From: Phallusia mammillata
Taxonomy: Eukaryota
NCBI GenBank assembly: GCA_965637545.1
Contig: OZ281494.1
Location: 18,104,001 to 18,168,000 of the forward strand
DNA length: 64,000 nucleotides
Direction: 5' to 3'
Part shown: one piece after another, positions 1 to 59,298 of the stretch
How the letters are laid out: every line of letters begins with the position of its first letter
How positions within the stretch are numbered: position 1 is the stretch's first letter
Notes under the pieces: model-generated
The model's input: only the letters and a program-made list of their open reading frames with translations
What the model was told of the DNA's origin: nothing
The model's database searches: none
Position numbers and translations under genes: made by a program

Positions 1-591
1 CTTCAGCAGAATGTTGACAACACGGAGGAATGTGAACCGACACAGCAAGAACAGACATTAGTAATTGAACAAATGGGAACTGATGCAGAGGTTATGGTAG
101 TGGAAAAAACATCTGTGGCGTGGTACAAGCGTTGTGTTGTCTGCTATCACCCAAGTGTACCTGATATTACGATCTTGGCTTATTACGATCCAGAACCACT
201 GGCTTTGCGTGAAGCAGGAACTTCTAAGTACTGCTGGCCACGAAAGCATGGACGTAGACTCTTTCTTAACATATACATCGAACCTAAAAAATACATTTTT
301 CATCGCATCGATAACACTCATAATACGGGTTCCTTTCAACTCCCCGGCACACCTCGAGGTCAGTGTCCTCAGTATATCAAGGCATTTCCTAATGGGAAGT
401 TATCCATGTCGACGACAAGTCAACCCAGTTCAGATCCGTTTGTGTTCATACTAAAACACGACAATCGAGGCCCTCAATACTTTCAGGTGCAACATAAAAA
501 AAGTGGCATGTATTTCGGAAAAGATCCAGAAACTTGCAAGGTATTGCTTGTGAATGAAAATGCTCAAGCTATTAACTTTGCACCCTTGTAA
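1..591 (+). CDS. Leaderless beta-trefoil-like (IL-1/FGF-like) protein A1; 5' end lies outside the window
   Basis: Frame 1 is open from base 1 (LQQNVDNTEEC...) to the stop at 591. It is a clear paralog of 6507..7142. The C-terminal pattern DPFVFILKH...FQVQHKKSGMYFG...AINFAPL resembles the last strands of beta-trefoils. Coding status is well supported; the fold is inference. Confidence 0.7.
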   Translation, partial: LQQNVDNTEECEPTQQEQTLVIEQMGTDAEVMVVEKTSVAWYKRCVVCYHPSVPDITILAYYDPEPLALREAGTSKYCWPRKHGRRLFLNIYIEPKKYIFHRIDNTHNTGSFQLPGTPRGQCPQYIKAFPNGKLSMSTTSQPSSDPFVFILKHDNRGPQYFQVQHKKSGMYFGKDPETCKVLLVNENAQAINFAPL

Positions 592-6506: not shown

Positions 6507-7142
6507 ATGAGCAGAGAAGAAACAGTACCATGTATTGAAATGCTTCAGCAGAATGTTGACAACACGGAGGAATGTGAACCGACACAGCAAGAACAGACGG
6601 TAGCAGTTGAACAAAGGGGAACTGATGCAGAGGTTATGGTAGTGGAAAAAACATCTGTGGCGTGGTACAAGCGTTGTGTTGTCTGCTATCACCCAAGTGT
6701 ACCTGATATTCCGATCTTTGGTGTGGAACTACGGGCTTTATGTGAAGTTATCAATTCAGACTATTGCTGGCCACGAAAGGGTGGACCTAGGCTCTTTCTT
6801 GACCAATACATCGACGCTAAAAAATACATTTTTCATCTCATTGACAACACTGGTAATACGGGTTACCTGCAACACCCCAGCACACGTACACGTCAGTATA
6901 TCAAGGCATTCCCTGATGGGAAGGTGGCCATGTCGACGACAAACCAACCCAATTCAGATCCGTTTGTGTTCATACTAGCACAGGACCAACTAGGGTCCGG
7001 ATCATCCTTTCAGGTGCAACATAAGCGAAGTGGATTGTATTTCGGAAAAAAAGAACAAAAAACTGGCATCTGTTTCGGAAAAGAATCAAAAAACATGGTA
7101 ATACTTGTAAAAGATAATGCTATTGACTTTGCACTCCAGTAA
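6507..7142 (+). CDS. Leaderless beta-trefoil-like protein A2 (211 aa, single ORF)
   Basis: Complete ORF with an acidic N-terminus, WYKRCVVCYHP patch and no hydrophobic signal peptide. Paralog of 1..591 with frame-preserving indels. Confidence 0.75.
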   Translation: MSREETVPCIEMLQQNVDNTEECEPTQQEQTVAVEQRGTDAEVMVVEKTSVAWYKRCVVCYHPSVPDIPIFGVELRALCEVINSDYCWPRKGGPRLFLDQYIDAKKYIFHLIDNTGNTGYLQHPSTRTRQYIKAFPDGKVAMSTTNQPNSDPFVFILAQDQLGSGSSFQVQHKRSGLYFGKKEQKTGICFGKESKNMVILVKDNAIDFALQ

Positions 7143-11328: not shown

Positions 11329-12096
11329 ATGGACTTCTTAGACGATTTGTTGCAAGCTGAATCGTTGCTAAGTGATCTCGAAGAAGACAGTGACGACGAT
11401 ACAACTGATCCGGGTTGCTGCCTTTGTTTGTTGATTTGTCCGTGGAAACCTAAAACGTTTTCTGCCCAACTGCAACTCCAAGGCTATGGGTTGTTAAAAC
11501 GCAAGCAGGCCATGACAAAGTATACAGTCAATCCTTTCGTGAATATTTCAACTGAGGGCATTACCAAACCAAAATACGTGAACACTTTTACGGAACAAAG
11601 TCGCAGCGAGTTACAGCCTACAAATGCGTTGTTGCCTTTAGATGATAAAGCTCTCGCAACATGGGCCTTTTCAAGAAAAACAGGAGACACCAACGTTTTA
11701 AACAAATGCAAAGTGGTGGTCTTTCGTGACGATAGCACAGAGTTTTGGAAACCCAAAAGTGGCCAAGTTTTTGTAACAGCAGTATCGTCCTACACACCCG
11801 TATGGACTGTATGGAAAGACGCAAACAACTATTGCGTTTTTGGCATAAATTTTAAAAGAAGAATGTACTACATTGCATGGTGCAACAACAAGGTACGATT
11901 GGTGCTGGGAACAGAACCAGTTGTCAGAAATCCTGTGACCAATGACCAGCGGTTTTTTAAAATGAAACACGATCGGCTGAGCAGAAAGAACATATTCCAG
12001 CACATCGGAACGAAGCAATTCCTAGCTATTGGATCAGATAAATTTCTGACCCTTGTTCCAATGAAGCCTCAGGCCCAGGGCTGGAAGTTGCAGTAG
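11329..12096 (+). CDS. Leaderless beta-trefoil-like protein B1 (255 aa from ATG 11329)
   Basis: ATG 11329 (MDFLDDLLQAES) matches the start of paralog 14786 (MDVVDDLMQAES). Acidic tract DLEEDSDDDTTD, CCLCLLICPWKP motif, then a beta-rich C-terminal domain. Confidence 0.8.
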   Translation: MDFLDDLLQAESLLSDLEEDSDDDTTDPGCCLCLLICPWKPKTFSAQLQLQGYGLLKRKQAMTKYTVNPFVNISTEGITKPKYVNTFTEQSRSELQPTNALLPLDDKALATWAFSRKTGDTNVLNKCKVVVFRDDSTEFWKPKSGQVFVTAVSSYTPVWTVWKDANNYCVFGINFKRRMYYIAWCNNKVRLVLGTEPVVRNPVTNDQRFFKMKHDRLSRKNIFQHIGTKQFLAIGSDKFLTLVPMKPQAQGWKLQ

Positions 12097-12233
12097 TGGA
12101 ATTGTACCAACATTCAGTTAAAATACAAAAACCTTTTTGGTAAACTGATATTTTTACAGCTGCACTTCTGTAATAGTGCCTAGTTTTAGATATCAGAGCC
12201 ATATGTCTGATACTAATTTTGATTCGACTACAC

Positions 12234-12664
12234 CAGCGGTTCTCAACCAGTGGGCCATGGCAATTTTACAAGAATAATGGCTTGGGGAGGAATTGAGAAG
12301 GAATGTAAATTAATTTGAATTATTCTATTTACGGTATAAAGTTACTTTGAGTTTCTGCAACCCCGTATGTTTATGATGTAATAAACTACTGTGTGATTAC
12401 AATAAAGCCAGATAATAGCAGAATATCAATTGTCCAATTATTCGGTCATAACTGAAAGTGCTTGATTAAAGAAGGGAAAGTGCTGTTTTATGATTTTTTG
12501 CATTAACATATTTTGAACTTATTATCTGTTTGAAATATGTCCTGCAGTTTTTTTGTTCTGAACCTACTTTATAGTTGTTTCTTTCTTTCATAAAAATTTA
12601 CTGGGCCACAGAATTTTTGTGCAATGAAAGTGGGCCACGAAAGAAAAAAGGTTGAGAACCACTG
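12234..12664. mobile_element. hAT-type MITE
   Basis: TIR CAGCGGTTCTCAACC / GGTTGAGAACCACTG; TSD GACTACAC vs GACTATAC (7/8). Confidence 0.85.
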
Positions 12665-14785
12665 GACTATACACCATTTTACCTTTTCCTATGTTTACAT
12701 AATACCCGCAGGTACTCAAGATCTTTGTATGTGAGATGTTTATACCATTATTTATTTGGAAGATGTTTTTTCGTTTTTATTTAAATTATTGATTTTTCTT
12801 GTTGATATTTTTATTTGAAACAATTTCTCCACTGTTAAATCTTAAATGTTTTTCTGTTCAATTTTTCTACCTGTTTTACTGTAAATTTCAAAATAAACCA
12901 AAATCGGCATTTTCCTAACGTGGGTAAAAACTTGGCTTAGACATACAAAACGAAGTGCATCTTTAAGAACTGGCTTAGACATACAAAACGAAGTGCATCT
13001 TTAGTCATTTGTTAAATCCCATTTGTTTAATTGCAGCACGCGAAGAGTTCGGAGGAAAATAAGTTAATAAACAAAACGCATTAAAGGCAAAATTCAAGTC
13101 TGTAATTATTAAAGTTTTTTTACAAAAACTGAGAAAAGGGACAACTAATATTTTGATTATTGAAATGTGGCAATTTGTTTATGTCTGGCAGTCTAAATTC
13201 ATTCAGGTCTTGTTTTTTGTAGCCGTCACAGTATGCTTAAAGTTAAATTTTTGTCTAAACGTGTCTAAACGTCGAAAAGTGTCTCAAACAACAGTATCAA
13301 TTAACTTTGACGTTGTAATTTCCATGAAATGTCTACCCGAGTATTTGATTTATCATTATTCGCCCATTAGAATTTGTTATTGATTCGAATGACATTTGTG
13401 GGAACTTTGGCAGATTCAGTTTGATCGTCACCATTTGAGGGGTATTTAAAGTGTTACTTGTCCACAATATGGCAATTAACCAAGTTAAAAACATAATAAA
13501 AGGCGATGCCATTATTGGAATAAGTTTCGTATTTGAATTAGAGGTCGGTTTATCTATTTACAAAATGCCACACAATGCTTCCCTGCTTTATTCATACCGC
13601 GATTGTGAAGTAGCGACTATTTTGGAAATGATAACGAATATGGACATTGTCACTTGTACAGTGCGTTGTAAGACGGTGGGAGGAAGAGCCCTAAAAGAAT
13701 AACGCTGTTCTTTCACACCCGACAGTGCTTCAGCATTGTCTTATATTCGCGTCATTCCAGAAGAAATAGTCAACACGCTATGTCCTGTTTAAATTTGAAC
13801 ATTGTAAGTCAATAATGGCACAACTGTCTGTTTCACCAACAACTGTTTTAGTTTTAATCTTTTTACTACTAACTGCATGTGGTCCAACCACAGACAATTA
13901 CATTGGCCGAGCACACTGCCTTCGACAACTCATTTATGTCATTTGATTTTTCTGTTTCCTTTTTCGTAGGCCCGTGGAAGTTTTGTTGTTGGTTTCAAGT
14001 AATTGGGTTGTTAGTTTTATGTAAATTCCGTTTAATATGTGAATTTATCTGTACTTTTCCCATTAAATTTGAAATCCTTGTTATATTGGTTCTATCCCAT
14101 ATCAATACCTTGTTTTAGTTAGAAGCAGGCTGTTTCAACAAGCATTGTATTATTTAAAAAAATGCTTTTACTTATTAGGGTAGTAAACAAGTCGCAATTT
14201 TTGCTGACTGAATAAAGTACTGAAATCCCTTGAAAAGATTTCCTTTTGCTATATGCTTGAACTAAGTCAAGTTGGTTGAGTTAAGGGCTGTGCGCCTATC
14301 AGAACTACATACATCTGTCTGAATATTTGCATTGATCCACAGTCTAAGAACGAAAGGATGGTCTCACAACCGACAGCATTGAGTGCACTGTAAGACTGTG
14401 GTGAATGGCCTTTCTACGTTCTCATCCCGGAATTCCGCCTGTTTTGCAAAATACTAAACAAATTGCTTTATTTTTTGCTTTACACGATTTGTCTTATAAA
14501 GGTGTTTGTATTGGTGTCAACCTGACGTTTCAAGCAATATGAAATCTGCTAAATGCATGTTGACAACAGTCGAATATTGCAGAACTGATTTTGGATTAGC
14601 GTAATGACGTCACACAATCAGGACAGCTTCTTGCCTATAATAGTTTCCTGTCAGCACGCTTTGAAACACTGACAAAAAATTAAACACCAAGTCGTAGCAG
14701 ATGGCTTGAGAATTAGGAACGCACGTCAGTCCAGAAGCTAGACCATACGAGTCCCAGTAAAACACGTCTTGTAACTTTTGACGAC

Positions 14786-15595
14786 ATGGATGTTGTGGAC
14801 GATTTGATGCAAGCTGAGTCGTTGCTAAGTGATCTTGAAGGAGACAGTGACGACGATACAACTGATCCGGGTTGCTGCCTTTGTTTGTTGATATGTCCGT
14901 GGAAACCTAAAACATTCGCTGCACAACTGCAGTTCAAAGGCTACAGATTACCAAAACGCAAGCAGACCATGGCAAAGTATACTGTCCATCCGTTCACCGA
15001 TTTTAGGACACGCGGCATTACTAAACCAGAATACGTAAACGTTTTTACGCAAGGTTACAACGAGGCTCAGCACTGGAATCCTGACATGGAAGAAAATCGT
15101 ACTAAAGCGTTGTTGCCTATCGAACAAGCAAACAATAAAGACAAAGCTCTTGCGGCATGGGGTATTTCGCAAACTACTGGAGACACTAATGTTTTTAGTA
15201 AATGCAAAGTGGTGGTCTTTCGTGACGACAGCACAGAGTTTTGGACGCCTAAAGGTGGTCGAGTGTATGTCACAGCAGGGTCGTCCTACACACCCGTATG
15301 GACTCTTTGGAAAGACACGAACTACCATTGCGCTTTCGGCATAACTTTTAGAAAAAGGATGTACTACATTGCATGGTGTAACAATGAGGTAAAACTGGTG
15401 CGGGGAACAGAACCAGTTGCCAGAAATCCTGTGACCAACGACCAACGATTCTTTAAACTCGAACACGATCGGCTGAGCAGAAAGAACATATTCCAGCACA
15501 TCGGAACGAAGCAATATCTAGCTATTGGATCGGATAAATTTCTGACCCTTGTCGCAATGAGGCCTCAGGCCCAGGGCTGGAATTTAAAAACGTAG
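14786..15595 (+). CDS. Leaderless beta-trefoil-like protein B2 (269 aa)
   Basis: Close paralog of 11329..12096, with many synonymous differences and in-frame indels confined to the middle segment. Confidence 0.8.
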   Translation: MDVVDDLMQAESLLSDLEGDSDDDTTDPGCCLCLLICPWKPKTFAAQLQFKGYRLPKRKQTMAKYTVHPFTDFRTRGITKPEYVNVFTQGYNEAQHWNPDMEENRTKALLPIEQANNKDKALAAWGISQTTGDTNVFSKCKVVVFRDDSTEFWTPKGGRVYVTAGSSYTPVWTLWKDTNYHCAFGITFRKRMYYIAWCNNEVKLVRGTEPVARNPVTNDQRFFKLEHDRLSRKNIFQHIGTKQYLAIGSDKFLTLVAMRPQAQGWNLKT

Positions 15596-16101
15596 ACATT
15601 ACCAAGTTCCGCAAGGTAATGTCGCTGTTTGTATTTGCATTTCACGGTTTTGTTTAGCATCTGAAAATAGTTATATGTATTGTGAAAAATATATGTATTG
15701 TGAAAGGGCGCAGTTTATATGATATATGCCTTCATTGGTAAAGGAAAAAAAAACATGTTTGAAACAGAGTTGTAAGCGGGTTCAAAATTCGAGTCCGAAC
15801 CCGGCCCGAACCCAGAAGTAAATACCCCAACCGGGTCCGAACCCGAATCGTTTTTGAGAAGCCCGTTTTTTCCCGAAACTTTGATTGGCAGGCCTCTCCA
15901 TAAAAGCCTACAAAACGTACTACTGTACATAATATAATTGAAAACAGCGTTTTAGGGCGGTTGGGCATCAAGTAAAGTCCAGCAACTAGCTACGTAGTTG
16001 GGTAATTTTCTCCAAAACAACAACAGACACAGAATTTGAAGTCATCGCATTTTTTAGAGATAGATTACTCAGATTGATCGTAATTCAGAAACGCATTTTT
16101 T

Positions 16102-16196
16102 ACGAGGTTCGAACCCAGGACACTCCTGGGGACGAATCCCGACCAAGGTTTTTTATGTCTGTATATGGGTCATGCGCGCCAGACCATTCGGCCAAG
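16102..16196 (-). repeat. tRNA-derived (SINE-like) repeat, copy 2
   Basis: The minus strand reads TGGCCGAATGGTCT (A box, tRNA-Leu/Ser-like) ... GGGTTCGAACC (B box); homologous to 10233..10325. Confidence 0.55.
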
Positions 16197-18494
16197 TTCC
16201 GGCCCAGAAACGTATTTTTTGAAAATTCTCCACTGCAGCATTGAGGCGCTATCTGTGGGCGAGACACTTCCTTGTATTTGTATCTTGCAAGTATCGTTTT
16301 CAAGTTGGTTTCGATTTTTTGTTTTGTGTCATTCATAGGCCTTCTAAACAAATAATCATGAAGCGTTTCAATGGCGCTATTGTTGTATTTTGTTTTCTTG
16401 CACCAACACCAGGGAAGCTATACACTGTTTTCAATCAAAAGACAATGTTGCTTCCTGTTAATTAAACTCTTATAATTTTGTTTTTATCTTTTATACACCA
16501 ACAAGTAGCAGCTGTTTAAAACTTTCAGTTTTTACTCTAGAACGCAAAAAAGACCGACTGGTTTATTGACGCAAAACCCTTTATTACACACAAAACAATG
16601 CCTTGCCACAATCGAAAATTTTGCAGTGTTTTGGTGTTGATTCTCATATTTCAGAACATTAAAAACTACAATTATCGTTGTCAAAACACTGGACTTTTGC
16701 GGCCATGTTGAGCCACGCTATACTTAATCGATGAATATTTATCGCAAACATCATTGGTTTTACGTTAAGTTATGTGCTGGCATATATACTGTAGTTTAGG
16801 TTGTCATGTAGTTGGTATAAACGCACAATTAATTTTTTTCCAAGTCACGTAAATAAGCCTCTTTTTTCGCATACCGTTGCGTCTTATTGACCTCAGACAT
16901 GTTTTACAAATCAAATGCTGCTAATATACATGGCATCAAAAGAAATGTAACAAATATTCGATAATAGTCAACGCTTTACTTCGGTTGTGTACAATCAAAG
17001 GTTGATTTGACTCAACCACGGGATCACAAATTCAAGAAATGATAACGGGCAATCATTTTGTGGCCACACTCAGAACGTGTCGTATTATAACACAATTATC
17101 CTTTAAGAACACAAATTGAGTTACATATGTGGATTATTGAAAACAACTGCTAAATGAACCTACCGTAACCCAAAAACACTGAGTGGGTTCCACAATTGCA
17201 TCCTGTAACCCGAAGCAATCCGTTATATTTGGACAAAGTGTTGTGACAACATTTTGCTGGTCATCTGCCTTAGTTTGTGTATGGTTTATTATCGTCGTTT
17301 TTTAGCTTTTATTGAGCAAGGAAACAAATCGTTTATCAAATATATAGTTGCTTTGATTTCCGTTTCTACTTTTTAAACATTTGTTCTGTCCACAAACAGT
17401 CTCATGCGCTTACGGTTGTACAAAAGAATGAACACACTCTGACGTCGTAGGTGGAGGGCTCGTGATGTCATAACAACGGATGAGCTACCTCGCTGTATCT
17501 GCTTCCCCTTTAGCGATAAGATACATACACAGAGTAACAAACTCGGGTTGTAATAACTTTGGAAGACTGTATGCAAGCACATCAAGAAGCAAGCTTTAGA
17601 TGGGTTTAGAAAAAACCCTCTATCGACTGAATTGTGACAAACAGAAAGTTAAGATAAATTAGTACCATGCAGCATGGATGATGAAAATGGCTGAAGATAT
17701 TATGTAACAGATGTGTTATTGTGTCACCATGACACAAAACGATTTTCACCTTACGAAAATTGCACAAAGTTGCATATTATAGGACTGTGTTACCTTTTTT
17801 AGGTCACGCCACCATACCTGCTACAAAAAGAATTCTCACGTGTGAAGCATTACGTAAACCTTGTGCAGTCAACATATATAAAAGAAAAAAGTTCGTTATT
17901 TCCGGTAATTCAACATTGGGGTCAAAATAAAATAAAATAAAAATATCCACTTCGATTTTATAATTATGTAGAAGTATAACGATGATATAATGGAGCCTTG
18001 TTCTAAATAGTAGTTTATCCGGTGTGATCCATGGTTCATAAAACGGTTGCCAAAGTTACAACTTTTATGTTTGTTATTTTCCGTTGTAAAAAGCTTAGAT
18101 ATATGTTTATATTTTATAGCCTAAGCTTAAGAACTTCTAGATTTAGTTGATCTAACTTTGTAGATTCAATTTACCCATTAAAAGATCAATTATGCATCAC
18201 GTCAGCGTGCTATGTGTGGCATGTCTATTTTGTACTGTTCGCACACAATAAGTCTATATACATCTAGTAGCCGGAAGCTAGCCCACAAGGTTCATAATAA
18301 ACCTGGGTCACCAAATCTTATTTTATTAATGCTTGGCCGCCAGTATAGCCAGGAGATCTATTTTTAATACATGTGCACGAAAGCATTATATTGTGCTCGC
18401 GGCAAAGTGTGCATTCCAGGATTGAGTACATGCCACACATTTTATTTTTATTTGTGCATTAAGGTTATGTGTGTAGGTATCGCCTAAGTCAAAT

Positions 18495-19247
18495 ATGAAT
18501 ATTAGTTTGGGTCCGGGCGAAAAGCAACCGCTGATCTCTAACTACGATTCCGATAGTAGCGACGATGAAGAAGACCAGTCTCGCTGTTGTCTGTTTCTTT
18601 TTGTCTGTCCTTGGAAGCCAGGTGCTGTGAGACAAAGACTTCAAGAAAGTGGGCTAGATTTGAGAACGAATAAAAAAGCTCCGCGACCGCACACCGTCAA
18701 TTACTTGCAGGAATTTCCTATGACCAGCCTAGTTCGTCCCGTGTGGTCGACACCCCACCAAGGCCAAGAAGGTGAAGTGACCGACGTGTTACCATACTAC
18801 AAAGATATACCCGACGACAGAATGTATTTTAACTGGGGCAATTATGCAACGGACAGTAATATTTTAAGAAAAAGTTTCCTACCGATTCGGCGCAAAAAAG
18901 GCCCAGAATCGTGGCACAAACAAGGAAGGGTGATCATGGTGAAGAACGATAATGAACCACCAATGTGGCACGTCTGGAGTTCTAAAAATGGCGACTTCAT
19001 TTTCGGATATCCTTCAGGTGGTAAATTTTTTTTCGTGACAGTAAACAATCGGAATCTGGTACGTTTGAAAAAAGGCACCGAGCAAGAGGTAACCAGAGAT
19101 GAAAGACTGTTCGTACGAGTCGCTGAAAGAAAACGTAAAGTTCTTCGTCACAACAAGACCGGAAAATATTTAACCATCGTGCCCAGACTGAAAAGATTGG
19201 CGTTGAGGTCGGAAATTAGTAAGGCAGAAGAATGGGACATTCTGTAG
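18495..19247 (+). CDS. Leaderless beta-trefoil-like protein C (250 aa), distant paralog of B1/B2
   Basis: Shares the acidic tract (DSDSSDDEED), CCLFLFVCPWKP, 'hTVN..', 'W.vWs....FG......ffI...nn.VRL..GTE...D.RlF' and 'H..T.kYL.I' blocks with B1/B2. Confidence 0.8.
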   Translation: MNISLGPGEKQPLISNYDSDSSDDEEDQSRCCLFLFVCPWKPGAVRQRLQESGLDLRTNKKAPRPHTVNYLQEFPMTSLVRPVWSTPHQGQEGEVTDVLPYYKDIPDDRMYFNWGNYATDSNILRKSFLPIRRKKGPESWHKQGRVIMVKNDNEPPMWHVWSSKNGDFIFGYPSGGKFFFVTVNNRNLVRLKKGTEQEVTRDERLFVRVAERKRKVLRHNKTGKYLTIVPRLKRLALRSEISKAEEWDIL

Positions 19248-20183
19248 GAACCCACAAACGCATGTTGTGTTTAAGCAAAGTTGGGTTTATTTTCGCACGT
19301 TAGTTTACACATTGGAATTTTGTCAGATAAATTGAACGGAAATTTGATAACAATATTAACAATAATAATATATGGCACACTTTGTTGCTTCGAATACGTA
19401 AAAAAAAACACGCATTGTTTGTTCATCTAACTGCTGTCTGTGATGATTTCAGGTGTCGTGTTTGTGTTTCCACTTATATCCAGTGCAATAAAAAAGACCA
19501 TACCCAACCAGTGTTACCATGAATCTAGGGCTCAGGTTGACCGAAAACAAATCGAGATTTTCCACAACAAATATAATTTTTCGGAAAAATATTTGAATTA
19601 ATGCAACTAATGTAAAATATAGTTAATGTCAACACACATACCAAGAATACACGGCATTTATACATTGCCTCGTTCAGAATTTTTTTCGCGTACACGTTTA
19701 AGTAGCATCGTGTCCCTTTTGACGACTGCCGTGAAGTTGTCGGCTTGACGGCTGCCGTGAAGTCATTTGATCCACTGTGATTTGCAAAAAACGCATTTAG
19801 CTCAGATATAAAGACTTAGCACTACTTAAAACGTCAGGCATATGGACGGTTGCAGCGAAAAAATACGCAGCCCAAAAGTGCGGAACGCAAGGTGCAACAA
19901 AACGCAAAAAAAACATATTTTCAGCATTATAAGAAAACCAACATAGAATGTCAACAAAAATGCGATTTTCGTTTCAGTGATACGTATTATTGTCGTGGTA
20001 TGTCGTTTTCGCTGCAAGAATCGTCACGCCAAACGTCGACCGATGCGTTTTACATGTTTCCGCAACGTTTAAAAACAAGGGCGTTGCGGCACACAGTTAC
20101 AATGTATATGATAACGTTTAAAACAGCTGTTGCATTTATTTGGAAGCGTTTGATTCTCAAATATCCTAAAGTATAGTTGCAAA

Positions 20184-21143
20184 ATGGACGAACGTGTGAT
20201 TTCTGTGGATGCTGATCCAACAGGCTTCGACTCATTGCTCTTCGAGCTGGATGCAAATGCGTCAAGTGATAGCGACATTTTTGTGAACCTTCCCGATTCT
20301 TCGATACCAATCAGCATTGTTCTTGACAATGTTGAACTGAATTCCACTGAACAATTACCAGAAACTGGAACAGTGACAGAAACAGTTGAGGTTTCGCCGT
20401 TGACTACAAAGAAATCAGAGCTCTTTGTGACAGAAAGCGAAACAGATTTGGAGGTAATTGAAGAACCAAATACAGACGAGTCGGCCGATGCACTCGCAAA
20501 AGAGGAAGAACTGAAGGAAGAAGATTTGACAGAAAAATCTGCTAAAGACGAGAAGCAGACGGAGAAAGAAAAACAACAACAGTTGACGGAAGAACCAGCT
20601 GAAAATACTGCTGAAAAAGAAGAACAGCTGAATACGAAAGAACCAGTTGATGAAACTACTGAGAAAGAACAACAACTAATAGCGGAAGAGAAACCTGATC
20701 AATCTACCGAAAAAGATCAACAGAACGAGGGCCTTTCTGATGACTTAGTCAAAGAAGAAGAACAAACGACCGAAAAACAATTAAATAATCAATTTCCTGA
20801 CAACGAGAAACAAACTAACGATCAAGAACCCAAAGCTTCAAAAGAATTGAAAAATCAAACCGTCATAAAAGAAGAACCAGTTCAAACTAGTAGTGCTGAA
20901 AACCCACAGCCGATTGTAGAAACAAAAAGTGAACAAGACAAACAAGTTAACATTTTGCCTGAAAGTGATTTAGCTGATGACGAATTTCCGGCACCACCGC
21001 CTCCAGAAATGCTGCACGACGAAGATAAGCTCGACGAACAAGATATCGCAAATGGATGGAACAGTGTGAAAAGTCCACGTACAAAAAAGAAATCTTGGTT
21101 CTTTCGATTATGCTCGGGCAAAAAGACAACAGCAATGGACTAA
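20184..21143 (+). CDS. Uncharacterised acidic low-complexity protein (319 aa) with DEFPAPPPP motif and basic/aromatic C-terminus
   Basis: 960-bp uninterrupted ORF, E/K/Q/T-rich; ends KKKSWFFRLCSGKKTTAMD. No family recognised. Confidence 0.65.
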   Translation: MDERVISVDADPTGFDSLLFELDANASSDSDIFVNLPDSSIPISIVLDNVELNSTEQLPETGTVTETVEVSPLTTKKSELFVTESETDLEVIEEPNTDESADALAKEEELKEEDLTEKSAKDEKQTEKEKQQQLTEEPAENTAEKEEQLNTKEPVDETTEKEQQLIAEEKPDQSTEKDQQNEGLSDDLVKEEEQTTEKQLNNQFPDNEKQTNDQEPKASKELKNQTVIKEEPVQTSSAENPQPIVETKSEQDKQVNILPESDLADDEFPAPPPPEMLHDEDKLDEQDIANGWNSVKSPRTKKKSWFFRLCSGKKTTAMD

Positions 21144-22155: not shown

Positions 22156-23320
22156 CTAGGCCTTGTTTCGGATTAAAATATGATTTAACGCTGATTCCAT
22201 TTTGTCGAGATCATAATGCATTGGACCCCAACCTCCTTCGAACACCACAATGCCATCTAAAACGATATAAAGCCGTTCTGGTAAAGCGCCATACGCCAAA
22301 CAAGCTTCATTATTCATATTATCAACTAAAACAGGCACATTTAGCTCTGGAACGGCATCAATTAACATCTGAGCGGCATCCGCTCGTTCTTGAAAATTAC
22401 GGTGGTTGTTTAACTGGTATTTGTTGTCGGGAACCACCCAACCCTCGTTAGGATGAGCTTCCTGTATATACACGACAACGAAATCGGCGTCTTTTCGATA
22501 ATTGTCGACAAGTTTGGCAAAGCTTTGTATCTGCGTAAAGAGAACTAACAAATAGGTTTAAAGCCTTTAAAATTTTACAACACGAATTATACAAACAACA
22601 ACCTTGTGTAACTGCACCAGGTAACACAAAATAGAAAAAAAAGGAAAAACAGACGTAAACGCAACAGCAAGGTACCTTTGCCATAAATGGCGGTCATGTA
22701 CACGATCCAAAATTGATCACAAGTGGGCGATGTTCTTTCATAAAACTCAGCAACGGTTTGTCGATAGAAGCTTGCAAATGGTTGACGACCATGTCAGGCG
22801 CTTTCTCGTCCAGTTGTACGTTGTTAAATTGAATAAGCTTGTTTCTAAACACTTGAGGAAATGTTGTTGTCTGAAAAACATGTTAACAAAATTAGCAACA
22901 CATGTAGTTAACACACATCCAATATGTACAGCACGATTTTTTTATCTGGTGCTGGTGGAGTAAGTTAGTTGACAGCTCCTGGAGGAATCTTGCAGTAAAG
23001 ATTGAAAGTGAATAAAGTGCATTTAAAAAGCCAAAATGCATTTAAAAAGTTTATCATTTTGGAGAGCTTGAAGTAATCCATCCAAAACTTTAATAATAAA
23101 AACATTGACTGAAATTGTAAGCAGCCCGACGTTTTTTTTAATTTAGTGCATACCAGTTACAACTTACCACATGCAACTTAAACTAAGTTAGTTAATGCGT
23201 TTATTGTCTTACTTTTACAATTCTTTTACTTCCCGTTTGAACTCCAAAAAGCCACTTCGATAGTTTTGACATTTTCAGCAAGAGTGTTGCTTCGCGCAAT
23301 AATAACATGAAAATTAGCAT
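22156..23320 (-). CDS. DIO: Iodothyronine deiodinase (selenoprotein)
   Basis: Exon 22870-22676 reads ...EKAPD...RPLVINFGSCT[TGA]PPFMAK, with Sec TGA at 22696-22694. A GT-AG intron follows, then exon 22530-22156: IQSFAKLVDNY...FVVVYIQEAHPNEGW...YGALPERLYIV...GGWGP. The putative first exon 23320-23213 is less certain. Confidence 0.93.
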
Positions 23321-35190: not shown

Positions 35191-35963
35191 CATAACTTGC
35201 AAGACGAATGTCTTTTAAAGCGACAAAATGCAAAACACACACATGTAAAACAGCGATATACTTCAGATTCAAAGGTTCCTTTTACAAACAAATGTATGGC
35301 ACGGCCATGGGCTCTCCTGTCTCAGTGGCCGTTGCCAACATGGTCATGGAGTCTGTGGAGGAACGCGCCTTGCAAACTTTTGCCAAACCACCACGATTTT
35401 GGCGACGATATGTAGATGATACATTCTGTGTCATTCAGAAACACCAGGTTACAGAATTTCTGCAACATTTAAACAATGTGCAACGAGGAATTGCGTTCAC
35501 TATGGAATTGGAAAGCAAGAACCGGCTTCCTTTTCTAGATGTGGAAATTTTAAAAGCGGCGGATGGTAGGCTTTCCACGCGGGTGTACCACAAGCCGACC
35601 AGCACCATGCGCTATTTACACTTCACATCCCATCATCCTTTGTACCAGAAAAGGGCTGTTGTCAAAGCACTCAAAGACCAGGCCAGACGCTTGACGACAG
35701 ACCCAGCATTGCTTCAGGCGGAGTTGCACAGGGTAAACGAGGCCCTGCGGTTAAATGGCTACCCGAACTGGATTCTCCGTGATCACAAAAAGGTTGCACG
35801 GAAAGAAATCCAGTACAAAGAACGTGCCTTCGTCACCTTACCTTACATACCAAGGTTAACAGATATAATCCGTCGCATGTTAACCGATTTCGGAGTATCG
35901 GTTGGGGTCAAACCAGCAAACACCCTACGTCAGATGCTGTCGCACCCAAAAGACCCTCTAGAT

Positions 35964-36457
35964 CAGGGGTGTGCAACCCGCGGGCCACAATCCGGCCCGC
36001 CAAGCCATTTAGTGTGGCCCTCAACAACACTCTGATTCTCTGATTAGTTTTCGGTAAATCTCCTAAGTTGCTATACGTAACAAGAAAAATGCTAAACCAG
36101 CGCATGAAACTTAATACACCCAGACCTATGGTCTTCTATTCGCACTAGGTGCTTGTTGCGTATCTATACCGAATGTGACGTAATATACCTCTTTGTCTAG
36201 TAAACAATTACTTTGTTGTGAAAGGCAGTGTTGCGACGAAACCTACTTGCACCTAACATTTTAAAGTTGATTTTGAAAGCAAAATAAAACAAAACGCAGG
36301 GGTGTGGAAATAATATCGACATGATATTATAATGCAAGCCGCACAAACAGTAGTGTAAAAAAGTGTAAATACGGTACATGAAAAAAACTGTGTGGCCCTC
36401 GCTTGATGTCCGAAATTGGTTATATGGCCCACCGCCGAAAAAGGTTGCACACCCCTG
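35964..36457. mobile_element. hAT-type MITE interrupting the Penelope ORF
   Basis: TIR CAGGGGTGTGCAACC / GGTTGCACACCCCTG; perfect TSD CTCTAGAT. Removing it restores the frame HPKDPLD|ATATRGVVYAIPC. Confidence 0.95.
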
Positions 36458-36916
36458 CTCTAGATGCTACTGCAACTAGGGGTGTGGTGTATGCTATACC
36501 GTGCGGGGAGTGTGACGAAATATACATCGGTGAGACTGGTAGAAGTCTAAATACGCGCCGGAAGGAGCACGAAAGGGATGTGTGCAAGAATGATGCGAAG
36601 AAATCAGCGTTGGCAAACCATGCAACGACTCACCACCACAGCATTAATTTTTCCGCTGCTCAGGTGTTGGTGAAGGAAACTGATTACCACAAGCGAAGTT
36701 TCCTAGAGTCTTGGAACATCCATTCACGCGCCAACACAATGAACGTTAAAACAGATGTTCTAATGCCGATAAATTATCGGTCGCTTTTACACCACTGAGC
36801 TTGTTTTATCTCTACGGTGGTGCGAGTTTGCAGCGCGCGATCTTGTTATCGCTGTTTTACATGTGTGTGTTTTGCATTTTGTCGCTTTAAAAGACATTCG
36901 TCTTGCAAGTTATGTC

Positions 36917-46448: not shown

Positions 46449-47390
46449 TTACGACTGGTTGTTGACGAACTTAAAAACACTTGCTTCATCCCTGTCCACC
46501 ATTTCTACTACGTCTTTGCCTGATTTCAGGTATTTACCTACCCTTTTCATTTTGAGCATGAATGTACCGTTATTAAGCGGCGAAACTGTGAAAACTGCGT
46601 GGCGAAGCGATTTGGAAGCTTTTAAGTCTTTGGTGTCGATTAGAACCAGTTTGTCATGGCTGACGAATCTTCGCAAAGAGCTCTCTGTGTGTGAAACCAA
46701 TGCCAGAACATAGAAGTTGCTTGAATCAAAAGACTTTAGACCAAACATTAAGTCATTGCTTTCCGCCACAGTGACGACAAACCAATGAGGACAAAAGAAC
46801 TGCTTGTCGCTGATGGCTTCACCTTCCGCCTTTAGCTTGTCTACGGTAAGAGCCTCCTTGGTCTCAACGTTCACCAGCCTAGCACGGAACATTTCACCGC
46901 TGTTAACCACGCTGTCCTTGCCCAAAGTTCTAAAAATCATGTGCTGAAATTCGCCAACAGTCAATTCTTCATCGTTTTCCTCTTCATCGTGTGGTGTAAC
47001 TTCACTTTGATTGTTATCTTCATCTTCCTGTTGGTTTTTTTCATCATCTGTATTTTGACAAACCAAAATTACTGGTTTGTCGGTGTTTTGTGTTGCATCT
47101 TCCTCATCTTCTACCACCTCTTCAAAGCTTTCTGATGCAACAAGAGTTTCATTTTGTTGCTCATCTGGATCGGCAAGACACGTTTCGTCACATTTGTGGT
47201 TTTCTAGGATAACAAGCTTTTTGTTATCGCACTTACAAGTTTCAACATGCACATTGCTTGGTCCCAGCATTGTAACACTACCATCTGTCAAGAAGTTAAA
47301 CGTAACTTCTTCAAAGGCGAAACCGCCGGAGCATCGGCATTGGCAGAAATCCATTACCGATTTTTGTTCCGAATGCAGTTCAAGCCCCAA
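46449..47390 (-). CDS. Leaderless protein with long acidic linker and C-terminal beta-trefoil-like domain (313 aa), protein D
   Basis: Single 942-bp ORF: Cys-rich N-terminus (FCQCRC), E/D-rich linker, then a ~145-aa beta-rich domain ending AVFTVSPL...FMLKMKRVGKYLKSG...EASVFKF. Confidence 0.7.
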   Translation of the reverse strand: MGLELHSEQKSVMDFCQCRCSGGFAFEEVTFNFLTDGSVTMLGPSNVHVETCKCDNKKLVILENHKCDETCLADPDEQQNETLVASESFEEVVEDEEDATQNTDKPVILVCQNTDDEKNQQEDEDNNQSEVTPHDEEENDEELTVGEFQHMIFRTLGKDSVVNSGEMFRARLVNVETKEALTVDKLKAEGEAISDKQFFCPHWFVVTVAESNDLMFGLKSFDSSNFYVLALVSHTESSLRRFVSHDKLVLIDTKDLKASKSLRHAVFTVSPLNNGTFMLKMKRVGKYLKSGKDVVEMVDRDEASVFKFVNNQS

Positions 47391-49854: not shown

Positions 49855-52800
49855 ATGATCTCACAAAAAGTGCTTGTTTTTGTTTGTGTGCTATTTGTTT
49901 CTATGGGTTGGTTAACTCATTGTTGGCTAGTACACCACACCACACACAGTTTCACATATGCAACTCAGAGGGGCTACATAAAACTTTTAAGACTTGAAAA
50001 GATTGAAAATCAGTTTGGAACTAGAGAATGGCGAGCATACCTGCCTGAAGTTGGCGATCTTCTTTCCAAAATCGAGCAGGGTATTGTCAAGTGGCCTGTG
50101 GACATCAAACTTACAACAGACCCTAAGTCATCTTTTATAATGTTGCGCAATAGCAACAATCTTAAAGTTGGTGATAAGTTGGCTGGTAGCATCCAAGCAA
50201 TGGATTTCCGTGGTAAAGCAAAAACACACGGCGGAGATCACTTTCGTGCCAGGTAAAGTTTTTCGATTTTGTGTTTTTATGGCAAGAACTCGCTTAGTCT
50301 CATCACGACATTTCTAAATCGTATTGCGCTACTTTTAGGTTTGGTGTGACGTAGGCTACGTTCAATTTTTGGTGCATTTTTGGACATCTACGTTGAATTT
50401 TTGGTGCATTTTTGGACATCAGGAGCGAAAGCAGAATTTACAAACTTACAAGAGTGGCTGTATACTTGTTTCTTATGTTTTGATTTTTTTAATTCAAGTA
50501 ACTCTTGGATGTCCGCGAATTTTATGTGGGCACAGCAGCTTAGCAAAACAAAACTTAAAACGAAATGGTACAAAAATACCGTCGAGTAAACAAACCAAGA
50601 CATCAGTCGCAGTTGTAAAACACGCTAAGACAATTTGTTTTTAAACATTTACTTTGTTTATTTATACAACACAAGCGAATATATACAAATCTCCTTTTTA
50701 GATTTATTTAGCAATTAAAAGTGTAAAACAAACAAATTACTGATAACGCAATAAACGGTGGTTACGCAGTGTAGTTGCACATACTGTCAGATAATAGGTT
50801 GCAAAAGTTAGTTGTGGTTAAATGAACCTGGAGGTGTAACACACCGCAATCACACGTGTGACCCGGAACCTAGTAATTACAATTTTTAAGTACCACAGCT
50901 ATTTCCCGCTGTACATTAGTTATCGCTGTCACGGCGAAATAAAATCAATGTATTGCATTTACTTATAAATCAGTTTTTGTCTTGAAAACAGTGACAGATA
51001 AATCGCTTGGAACGATAGTAAGTTCCAAATACTCGGTTCTCCCTTTAACCAAGACGTTATTCGCTATCCTGCCAAAATCGGCTATTGGACTGTTTTTCTA
51101 ACATGTGTGGAGAAATACGTTTCAGTCTGAGAAAACAATCCTTCGATGAAAAACGAATTCAAAAACGAAATCAAACAATATAAAATATAATATATTATGT
51201 GTTGTTGTTTTTTTCAATCCGCCAAATTGCGTGTAAAATAGTACCAGTGTAAAGGTAAGCCGACCTTCTTGGCAAATTACATTATGAGCGTTTCAGAAAC
51301 CTTAAAAGTTCGCTTAAATGCAACAGCGTAAACATTTATATCGGGCCAACTGTTTTGTTTCTATTTAAAAGCCACCAAGCGGAAGTTTTGTAAATAAGGG
51401 ACATCACAAATATACTTTCGAACGACAATCGTGCTAATTTTTGCCACATTTACATAGACTTGTCAAACTCAATGAATTCGGACGAATTACTGAAGACGGT
51501 ATAGCAGTGATGGTGAAAGACAACATGAACGGTACTTACGCTTGGAACACGATTATTTCATGGCCAGGACGGAGCAAGCTAATAATTGAACTTGTTCACT
51601 CGAGCGAAGCGGTCGTGGATATGGTTTTGCAGACGGCGTCGCAAGAGAACAAACAAAGACTTTTTCTTGCACAGCTTTCAAATGGGGCAGCCGTCAACTG
51701 TGACATCGTATTAAGGTTTGGCGTGCTTAGTTTTTTTTATACTTTGTTTTGGCATTTTCGATAAGAAACGTTCGGTACAACGCAATTTGTCTGTCGACAA
51801 AATAAATAAGGGGCTCCTTCCATAAAACTAAAGTAAACCATTTTCTAAAAAAAACATAAAATATTGTGTACCCTCCACATGTAATAAGTTGCCAACTTTT
51901 GGAAAGTAATATGATTCACCACTCGATGTGTTTTACGCTGATAAACCCTTACGCAGAATATATTCAAATCTACTGTTGCGCTGTCTTTAAATATTTATAG
52001 AAAGCAAATTTTTCTTGTGAGTATCATCATTTTTTCCAATATCGGTTCTCTCACTTTTTTCGTGCTTACGAGCATTAAAACATAGCCTAGTAAGATGACG
52101 TGTACAGGTGGTGATGTCAAACACACAGTAGGGTGACAACGCTGTTCACAATCGCAAAAACATGTAGTATTTTTAAGCGTTGGCATAGTCTGTGGTAGGG
52201 TGGCATTGAGACCATACTCTCACACATTTTTGGTTTTGTAACTCGATGTTTCAAATCAACTGATATAGAGGCACAGCAGTTTTGCCCCTTCGCTTTTTCC
52301 TCCAAAAAAAATCTGTGCCTCTCTAAAAATTACTTGCGGATAAATATTTTATTATGTCATTGAAGGTAAACGTACATCAGTCAAACGGAATTTGCATTTC
52401 CCTGCATATTGCATCCAAATATTTATACTTTTAAAGCCTAATGTTGAATACTAATACTTGTTTTTATTGTTAGGGATAAGTCGTTAGCATGCGATTACTC
52501 TAGACCTGAAAACGGAATAACATGGACTTGTAAAAAAATGTCAGTTAACAGTTCATGTTCAGAGATTGTGATGAGAAATAAAAACCCACAAAAACCAGAT
52601 GGCCGCTTTGAAAATAAGGAATTCTTTCAAGAAAACATTACGTGGCAAGTCGAATTGAAGAATTCAGGACAAACATTTGTCGTCAAAGGTGACATCAGAG
52701 ATACGAAAAGCACTGAAAAATGCGATTTATCGACGGGAATGCGTAGTCTTATCTACCCAAACTATTATCGTCCCAGTGGATTTTATTATCAAGGAAGATG

Positions 52801-53479
52801 GATTTCTCTGCTTTGCGATAACAAACAGAGAGATCTGAAACGAGTTCAAAACTGCCTACAGAACACATCTGTTTATTTTATTGGCGATTCCACCATGAGA
52901 CAATGGTACTTTAGTCGGTTAAGGTTGGCTTTGAAAGTCGACGGATCTGCTTCAGATGTTAAAGGAAAGTACTGGTCTTTGCCCCAAAACTCGTTTAACA
53001 AAGAATATCATATCGAGTTGCATTACAGAGCACATGGAGATCCACTATATAACCCAGGTCCTCCTTCTAGTCGACCTTATGTTGTAGATTCACTGAAATC
53101 AATCACAGGCAACTCTAAAACAGTTGTTGTGCTGAACATCGGTGCACACTTTCTACTTTACGACCCTTCTGTCATACTTCAACGAGCAGCAGGGATAAAA
53201 AATGCGCTTATTGATTTGCACAAACGTCTACCAAATGTTAAAATATTCCTTCGTGGGTCGATTCGTTACAAAAAGACTTCTCAGCTTTGCCCAAGTGAAT
53301 GGTTGTACATGAGAACAGATCGAATACTTCGGTGGTATTTTTCTGATTTACCGTATGTTGGATATATTGACACTTGGGAAATGACAACACCGTTGCCCCA
53401 GAATAACGTCCATGCAGGTTCCGAAACTATTGATCAATTTATTTCTTTGTTTCTATCGTATACCTGCCCCGATATTTAA
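49855..53479 (+). CDS. NXPE: NXPE family (neurexophilin and PC-esterase domain) protein, copy A, intact
   Basis: Exons 49855-50252, 51458-51715 and 52474-53479 splice in frame. N-terminal signal-anchor; KTHGGDHFRAR, DNMNGTY, VHSSEAV, FIGDSTMRQWY and DTWEMT...NNVH motifs. Confidence 0.88.
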
Positions 53480-57924: not shown

Positions 57925-59298
57925 ATGAACTTGCAAAAAATTATGCTGGTTATTGTTTGTGCCCTATTTGTTTCATTGTGTTGGTTAACTCGTTTTTGGT
58001 TGGTATATGAAACTGCACACAGCTACACATATACAAACCATAGGGGTTATGAAAAGCTTTCAGGACTGGAAAAGATTGAAAACCAGTTTGGAACAAGAGA
58101 ATGGAGAGCATACCTGCCTGAAGTTGACAATCTTCTGAACAAAATTGAGCAGGGTATCGTCAAGTGGCCAGTGGACATCAATTTTACAACAGACCCAAAA
58201 TCATCTGTCATCATATTGCCTAGTTTAAAAAATCTCAAAGTTGGTGATAAGTTGGCTGGTAGCATCCAAGCAAGAGATTTCCACGGAAAAGCAAAAACGC
58301 ACGGCGGAGATCATTTTCGTGCGAGGTATTTCTTTTTATTTTATGCCATTACGGTACATTTTTTACAGTATTTTTAAGCAGAAAAGTAGGCCTACCCCAA
58401 AGTTTACTCAGGCCTTGCCACACGGTATACTAGTGATCGACGGACTGTGTCGCTTGCAGGTTTGGTGTAACATATGTTTTATTTTTGGACACATTCAACA
58501 AAAGCAACATATGAGTAGCAGTGTACATAAAAGGTTATTGTTAATTTTATTTCAATATTCACAGAGTTTTTTCTTAGACCCCTTGGGTGTCCGTAACTCC
58601 TTGCTGGGAAACCACACAGTAGTGTAGCGCAGTAAACGTTTAACAGAAAAAGAAGAGGAATTAAGCAAGCACTGTTATGTGTAAAAACACGAGCCAATGT
58701 TTAACAGAGAGCATGAAAAAGTTTGCAATTCTGAAATAACTTATACACCAGCAACCATTTATTACCCCCTAATAGGGGGCCCCTATACATATTGCGTGTT
58801 GAAATCTATCTTGCTTGTCAAGACCATTTTTACAAATTTCACAACGTTAGAAAAAACTTTTTGTATATCAGCCAATAGGAAAAAATACAATGTAGGAGAC
58901 ATTTGGTGTCCAAAAAGTGTGGGAGTTATTTGATTTTGTTCCCTATGCATTTTAAGCATGTATTGGGTGCCATTCAAACAGGTGCTATCAAGAGAAGCCT
59001 TTAAGTAACATTCGTACTGTATTTTGACACATACTTGTAGACTTGTCAAGATGAAAGATTTAGGACAGATGACTAAAGATGGAATAGCAGTGATGATGAA
59101 AGACAACATGAACGGTACTTATGCTTGGAACACGATTATTCCATGGCCAGGACGTAGCAAGCTAATAATTGAACTTGTTCACTCGAGCGAAGCGGTCGTG
59201 GATATGGTTTTGCAGACGGCGTCGCAAGAGAACAAACAAAGACTTTTCCTTGCACAGCTTTCAAATGGGGCAGCCGTCAACTGTGACATCGTATTAAG
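57925..59298 (+). CDS. NXPE: NXPE copy C, exons 1-2 (57925-58325, 59041-59298); exon 3 not within the window
   Basis: Open, spliceable exons nearly identical in protein to copy A. The intron-2 homolog is interrupted at ~59940 and resumes at ~63536-63640. Confidence 0.75.

Follow-up and report, generated by a model that had tools for sequence, protein, structure and literature searches.

A 64,000-nucleotide stretch of the genome of the ascidian Phallusia mammillata (contig OZ281494.1; the whole stretch, which contains no N, is referred to below as the window) carries six genes of one protein family, and no more, as determined by a six-frame scan with a family hidden Markov model (HMM). Three of them, designated B1, B2 and C, encode proteins with a common layout in which an acidic N-terminal flank is followed by the motif CC-x5-C-P-W-K-P (the Cys motif) and a basic stretch, ahead of a C-terminal domain predicted to be a beta-trefoil. 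The initial annotation of this locus had read the N-terminal block as possibly that of a caspase-released, palmitoyl-anchored pro-form of an IL-1-type protein. All three genes are intact open reading frames (ORFs) on the plus strand, with no in-frame interruption, and contain the N-terminal peptide strings that the initial annotation had quoted for them. B1 and B2 are 76% identical (whole-gene ratio of non-synonymous to synonymous substitution rates, dN/dS, 0.28), and B2 and C 29%. Their features are as follows.

11329-12096 (+): gene B1, intact single-exon ORF of 255 amino acids, with acidic tract, Cys motif, basic linker and predicted beta-trefoil (family HMM expectation value, E, 5e-47)
11365-11415 (+): B1 acidic tract (residues 13-29), within an N-flank (residues 1-29) of net charge -12
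11416-11451 (+): B1 motif CCLCLLICPWKP, residues 30-41
14786-15595 (+): gene B2, intact single-exon ORF of 269 amino acids
14822-14872 (+): B2 acidic tract (residues 13-29), within an N-flank of net charge -11
14873-14908 (+): B2 motif CCLCLLICPWKP, residues 30-41, with a basic stretch behind it (+9 across the next 40 residues)
15188-15592 (+): B2 domain, residues 135-269, modeled by AlphaFold as a 12-stranded beta-trefoil with a predicted local distance difference test (pLDDT) score above 93
18495-19247 (+): gene C, intact single-exon ORF of 250 amino acids
18537-18584 (+): C acidic Ser/Asp tract, residues 15-30; the N-flank has a net charge of -6
18585-18620 (+): C motif CCLFLFVCPWKP, residues 31-42

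The back-translated core of the motif, TGYCCNTGGAARCC, lies at 11437, 14894 and 18606, three occurrences in the window against 0.13 expected and a count reached in none of 100 shuffles, and CPW[KR]P is confined to these same three sites in a six-frame regular-expression search. The motif was not found in A1, A2 and the sixth gene, the other paralogs of the window (73-591, 6507-7142 and 46449-47390 on the minus strand). Alignment of B2 with C yields 71 identities in 272 columns (26%), of which 13 fall within the 22 columns spanning acidic tract and motif; no other 22-column segment of the alignment scores higher, with a permutation p of about 0.05. The block is thus real and, if modestly so, the best-conserved N-terminal part between these distant paralogs, as had been claimed for it. 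Between B1 and B2, dN/dS is 0.13 in residues 1-42, the lowest of three parts, compared with 0.42 in the linker and 0.23 in the C-terminal domain, at a synonymous divergence (dS) of about 0.48. Together with the conserved block, these values indicate that the N-terminus is part of the translated protein and that purifying selection acts on it; synonymous sites between the B genes and C are saturated, so that the motif they have in common must have been held by selection. A reading of the N-terminal stretch as 5' untranslated region with a downstream start codon was ruled out by the dN/dS of 0.13, by conservation across species and by the position of ATG 14786, the first within the stretch of B2 covered by probable transcript contigs (see below).

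The same arrangement is found outside the window. Seven motif-bearing proteins are now known. They come from the window and from three or more further sources, and two are encoded by genes of Clavelina lepadiformis; besides B1, B2 and C, they are the following.

P0001, on a 1.6 kb Logan contig: acidic tract DVDSSDEDEDLES; motif SRCCLFLFVCPW, identical to that of C at 12 of 12 residues, with 40% overall identity
P0002, a single ORF on contigs in four metagenome assemblies: acidic tract present; motif CCLFLCICPW
P0004, Clavelina lepadiformis locus L006: acidic tract present; motif CCFLFSLCRW
Upstream tandem neighbor of P0004, L006 8001-9098: tract DANDEVDNPV; motif CCFIVCVCPF

The invariant core across the seven is CC-x5-C-[PR]-[WF]. 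Absence of the motif from orthologs, which the initial annotation had named as evidence that would speak against its reading, is therefore not what the other species show. The charge pattern is kept as well: the N-flank carries a net charge of -6 to -12, with one exception (+3, in a longer flank), the 40 residues past the motif are at +3 to +9 in all seven, and in all but one of them the remainder of the protein is basic. In a tree built on the C-terminal domain only, the motif bearers fall into three pairs with strong support and the single P0002; on this sequence evidence the Cys motif may have had a single origin.

A HMMER search with a profile of B1, B2 and C against 1.84 billion representative proteins retrieved 27 proteins of 140-298 amino acids at E <=1e-3. 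No Pfam model covers the family. Every member whose source is named is ascidian and labelled uncharacterized (Clavelina lepadiformis P0004 and P0007, Ciona intestinalis P0005 and P0040, Ciona savignyi P0013 and Phallusia mammillata P0015), and B1, B2 and C accordingly belong to an uncharacterized family found so far in sea squirts only. A literature search returned no paper citing five accession numbers or gene identifiers of family members, and an exact look-up of B2 in public assemblies returned no record. Word-index protein searches, one with B2 and one with the 33-sequence family alignment, were blank; as the alignment's own members are in the collection searched, neither was taken as absence of relatives. 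At the Clavelina lepadiformis locus (CAUIVY010000063.1, L006 6326-10816), three single-ORF family genes lie in tandem, adjoining a choline-transporter-like gene. The middle gene of this array, encoding 365 amino acids, has a run of near-identical DPP(N/T)DG units between its Cys motif and its trefoil.

The family tree resolves two clades, each with 95% support. Classical signal peptides were recognized by a crude hydrophobicity rule in six of the eight rows of one clade (P0012, P0014, P0016, P0018, P0019 and P0025), and by eye in P0011 too. Most members of the other clade have no signal peptide, and this leaderless clade holds every motif-bearing protein. Six of its members start with sequences matching the N-myristoylation rule G-{EDRKHPFYW}-x2-[STAGCN]-{P}: P0003 (MGQLSS), P0008 (MGSSNTK), P0009 ((M)MGNGTS), P0013 and P0040 (both MGGVDS) and P0022 (MGCLYSK), the last being of the classic myristoyl-plus-palmitoyl, or dual-acylation, type. 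The proteins of Ciona intestinalis and C. savignyi share the start MGGVDSV to the letter, although they diverge straight after it and are only 66% identical overall. In P0015, the Phallusia member of the same subclade, KCC replaces the MG start, and in the Clavelina protein P0007 the true start may be an internal M-GGGPSS. A third N-terminus combining basic, aromatic and Cys residues also recurs, as KLFYWLWCF (P0010), KKWYYKLWCF and, in Clavelina, KRKWFLRYFC. Candidate lipid-type or interfacial membrane signals thus appear repeatedly at the N-termini of the leaderless clade, and this recurrence is the strongest indirect support for the Cys motif being an anchor.

Two further reading frames of the window bear on these N-termini. 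The sixth paralog, at 46449-47390 (-), groups with the signal-peptide clade on a very long branch; its start, MGLELHS, deviates from the myristoylation rule, and a C-x-C-x-C cluster (CQCRC) lies some 15 residues further on. The Glu/Lys-rich ORF at 20184-21143 (+) encodes 319 amino acids, has no Pfam match and ends at its C-terminus in KKKSWFFRLCSGKK, a basic-aromatic-Cys string resembling the N-termini KRKWFLRYFC of Clavelina and KLFYWLWCF of P0010. It was considered as an upstream exon of a seventh trefoil gene and rejected, as no trefoil exon follows it and the HMM scan gives six members only.

The C-terminal domain of B1, B2 and C is modeled as a beta-trefoil whose nearest solved structure, by a small margin, is that of IL-18. 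In an AlphaFold model of B2 based on the 33-sequence alignment, the 134 residues preceding the 12-stranded domain are of low pLDDT except for a predicted helix at residues 41-50; with three sequences only, the pLDDT was 31, and a good model was obtained after 27 relatives had been added. Foldseek ranked human IL-18 first (E 4.8e-5), followed by HA33, the lectin SeviL, IL-1beta and FGFs. Structural comparison separated IL-18 from the trefoils of lectins, FGFs and fascin by no more than about 2 Z units, and in the ESM Atlas IL-18 clusters and ricin-type clusters scored about equally (template-modeling scores of 0.62 and 0.65, respectively). At the level of sequence, the only matches to the family profile were designed symmetric trefoils (Mitsuba and Symfoil, E 8e-5 to 3e-3), and a PDB sequence search with B2 alone gave no match. 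Among Pfam models, IL1 (PF00340) matched none of the 33 family members, nor B1, B2 or C at E up to 1; ricin matched none of the 33; PLAC8 (PF04749) matched neither B1, B2 and C nor the 33; FGF (PF00167) matched one of the 33 only, at E 0.12; and Fascin (PF06268) gave sub-threshold matches to three of the 33 (best E 0.0013, with C at 12.3 bits against a cut-off of 23.1), which does not amount to an assignment to Fascin/FRG1 (PF06229). Language-model features point to trefoils of the Fascin/FRG1 type, with scores of 0.93-0.94. Of the ricin-type QxW signature, the alignment as read by eye retains Q/A-x-W in the last lobe only, as QGW in B1 and B2 and EEW in C. The IL-1-type identity proposed for these proteins is thus borne out as far as a 12-stranded trefoil with IL-18 as its best structural match, and no further: no IL1 match exists among the 33 members, the genes have no introns, and other trefoil families stand nearly as close. 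IL-18 and IL-1 have about 10% identity to the family, and the IL-1 family is without the linker of about 100 residues and the Cys motif that characterize B1, B2 and C. Membership in the IL-1 family is not established.

Contigs from four sequencing runs belonging to three studies were placed on 14300-19400, and give a picture of transcription around B2.

14605-14643 (+): promoter-like elements upstream of B2, comprising TGACGTCA at 14605-14612 and the TATA-like box TATAATAG at 14636-14643
14705-15748 (+): contig-covered B2 stretch with no joint, from probable RNA runs of three studies

Contigs near B2 start at 14705, 14706 and 14707 in three runs, and the flanks (14300-14641 and 16352-18745) are empty except for a few shallow contigs from one run at 16352-16693. 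Such coverage is consistent with an unspliced mRNA about 1 kb long. Blocks related to the upstream elements of B2, whose promoter function is putative, also precede B1. For C, one probable RNA run gives a contig over the 3' part of the gene (18901-19356). A repeat, probably dispersed and expressed, lies just downstream of B2 at 15829-16350; contigs of all four runs reach very high depth there, with many loose ends.

We propose that the Cys motif is an S-acylated membrane anchor, a reading to which, on sequence features, we give about even odds. The palmitoyl-anchor part of the initial annotation accordingly remains plausible, now with comparative support. The hydrophobic uncharged run is only 10-12 residues long in B1, B2, C, P0001 and P0002, with a best 19-residue Kyte-Doolittle mean of <=1.05; it is therefore too short and too weakly hydrophobic to form a membrane-spanning helix, which is ruled out for the Phallusia-type proteins. 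The context is typical of S-acylation, with Cys in a hydrophobic and basic setting and neither a signal peptide, of which the motif-bearing proteins have none, nor a membrane-spanning helix. The N-terminal module of the B1/B2/C sub-group would then consist of the acidic flank, a 10-12 residue Cys stretch (CC-x5-C, ended by Pro-Trp) and a partly helical basic stretch, within a presumably disordered region ahead of the basic C-terminal trefoil. In the geometry we infer, the three Cys, at i, i+1 and i+7, would lie on one face of a two-turn helix closed by Pro and would be palmitoylated, with Trp and the basic Lys and Arg residues at the membrane interface. A strongly basic trefoil that lacks a signal peptide and is synthesized in the cytosol would in this way be tethered to the cytosolic (inner) leaflet, and other members of the leaderless clade may reach the same tethering through N-myristoylation. 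The acidic tract would more probably act by its charge than as a caspase site, either masking the basic region or serving as a phospho-acidic sorting element of the CK2 type.

Several observations weigh against such an anchor. The strict spacing of the Cys is unusual for S-acylation sites, where spacing is usually variable, and would also fit a metal site or structural element; the AlphaFold pLDDT of the motif is about 50; the hydrophobic stretch of the Clavelina proteins is longer (15-19 residues, with a 19-residue Kyte-Doolittle mean of 1.6-2.2) and might insert as a helix or hairpin; classical signal peptides occur in the sister clade, so that the domain is able to function extracellularly; and the runs used for expression are only probably RNA, their type having been guessed by the tool. 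The Clavelina stretch lends credence, for the Clavelina versions more than for the others, to a Cys-rich stretch that itself enters the bilayer, forming a short hairpin or a reverse signal-anchor, in which case the proteins would be integral or monotopic, the Cys incidental or secondarily acylated, and the trefoil on either side of the membrane. Secretion of the sister clade would agree with this, as would flanks that are acidic before and basic after the stretch, matching the positive-inside rule, and the likeness of the Cys motif to CCXXXXCPC, which PLAC8/PCR proteins have in a hydrophobic membrane-associated region (PMC12467093). Yet only 10-12 residues would be available for insertion in B1, B2, C, P0001 and P0002, PLAC8 gave no Pfam match, and what is invariant is the position of the Cys rather than the hydrophobic residues between them, all of which make insertion unlikely. 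Alternatively, the spacing of the three Cys, the same in seven of seven proteins, could reflect binding of a metal or the formation of intermolecular disulfides leading to oligomerization, with no lipid involved. The trefoil fold is common to the FGFs, and in FGF2 cysteines drive oligomerization at the membrane. Three thiols in a purely hydrophobic stretch, with no conserved His, Asp or fourth ligand, would nonetheless be an unusual metal site; the cytosol is reducing; and the parallel myristoylation signals of the family point to lipid, so that we judge this explanation quite unlikely.

Different considerations apply to the acidic tract, which the initial annotation had interpreted as the site of caspase release. 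LExD is confined to B1 (LEED) and B2 (LEGD); C, P0001, P0002, P0004 and the Clavelina neighbor have other Asp contexts, one of them the DEVD of the neighbor, and no Asp site is conserved in position across the seven proteins. What is kept is the net negative charge, along with an aligned DS[SD]D[DE] common to B1, B2, C and P0001 that is equally well a CK2 phosphorylation consensus. Caspase release is thus not sustained by comparison, acidity alone being conserved. The accompanying statement that a cut within the tract would leave the anchor on the trefoil is correct, since the tract lies upstream of the Cys motif. An IL-1/IL-18-like pro-cytokine, palmitoyl-anchored and activated by caspase in the Asp tract, would draw on LEED↓S in B1, LEGD↓S in B2 and DEVD↓N in one Clavelina paralog, and on the opposition of an acidic N-flank to a basic remainder. 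In a version of this scheme based on a charge switch, loss of the acidic piece would free the basic remainder to attach to the membrane and to exit unconventionally from the cell; in the case of IL-18 in a teleost, once caspase has removed the acidic pro-piece, the mature form, which is basic, moves to the membrane and into microvesicles (PMC12953802). A switch of this kind is the only coherent effect that we can ascribe, by analogy, to a cut in the acidic tract, and we hold it to be improbable. Against the pro-cytokine as a whole stand the lack of a conserved site, with xxxD arising by chance in Asp-rich tracts and LExD missing from C, P0001 and P0004 alike; the position of the Asp sites, which lie only in the acidic tract some 100 residues upstream of the trefoil, compared with the trefoil edge in IL-1beta and IL-18; and the lack of IL1 matches, the closeness of other trefoil families and the intronless genes noted above. 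It is in our view very unlikely. A caspase cut exposing a Gly for post-cleavage myristoylation was also considered and set aside, no suitable D↓G site being seen by eye in the tracts. The tract might instead be an acidic-cluster sorting signal phosphorylated by CK2, like that of the furin tail, which would steer the anchored protein between compartments; this concerns the Asp tract only and is compatible with the anchor. At least one S/T-x-x-[DE] lies within the tract of all but one of the seven proteins, among them those with the aligned DS[SD]D[DE]; the tract of the Clavelina neighbor, by contrast, contains no Ser or Thr, and P0002 has one poor site only. We regard a sorting function as possible, if on the doubtful side.

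The anchor proposed for the Cys motif is of a known kind, both as a Cys-cluster lipid anchor and as a lipid-tethered trefoil; neither the motif nor the family seems to have been described. Cys clusters serve as S-acylation anchors in the SNAP-25 linker, cysteine-string protein, GAP-43 and SCG10. Like these, the motif places several Cys in a short hydrophobic stretch beside basic residues, with no signal peptide or membrane-spanning helix; it differs in its strict CC-x5-C spacing, its Pro-Trp end and the acidic tract that precedes it, and there is no sequence relation. The FGF family mixes trefoils that are secreted through a signal peptide, leaderless or purely intracellular, and resembles the present family further in its basic domain, Symfoil designs derived from FGF-1 being among the matches to the family profile (E 3e-4 to 3e-3). 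Hisactophilin of Dictyostelium is a cytosolic beta-trefoil tethered to membranes by lipid (PMC9245636, PMC9945329), as the members with MG-type starts would be, and those with the Cys motif by analogy. It differs in being myristoylated at Gly2, His-rich and pH-switched, and has no Cys cluster or long N-terminal extension; hisactophilin was not among the top 50 structural matches. The PLAC8/PCR/FW2.2 proteins likewise have CC, a few hydrophobic residues and CP in a membrane-associated segment (PMC12467093), but with x4 and CPC where B1, B2 and C have x5 and CPW, and they are otherwise unrelated.

Other features of the window are distinct from the trefoil genes. The ORF at 22156-22551 (-) corresponds to the C-terminal half of iodothyronine deiodinase (Pfam T4_deiodinase, E 8e-37), and probably represents the terminal exon of a gene for this enzyme. 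The region 35208-36798 (+), in which a reverse-transcriptase ORF (35208-36035) is followed by a GIY-YIG nuclease-like ORF (36403-36798), both recognized by eye from their translations only, looks like a Penelope-like retroelement. A large ORF at 52538-53479 (+) matches the NXPE4 C-terminal domain (E 8e-51), and two related ORFs with signal-peptide-like starts lie at 49855-50256 and 57925-58377 (+); this suggests tandem NXPE-family genes across 49855-53479 and 57925-58377 (+).

An "IL-1-like activity" has been reported in tunicates since 1989 with no gene found for it, and no IL-1-like cytokine of invertebrate chordates had been molecularly characterized as of 2022 (PMC9020223). It is conceivable, though we consider the odds to be long, that the proteins described here form an ascidian IL-18-like trefoil signaling family whose lipid-anchored leaderless members load on the inner plasma membrane and exit on vesicles, with the acidic N-terminal piece as a removable or phosphorylatable charge mask. 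Were this true, it would give a molecular identity to that activity, and should the trefoil signal between cells, it would bear on whether invertebrate chordates have IL-1-like cytokines. Irrespective of this, the family offers a natural comparison, within one small fold, of delivery by a signal peptide, an N-myristoylation start or a fixed Cys motif, and if the latter is an acylation module, it would constitute a compact and portable membrane tag of unusually strict geometry.

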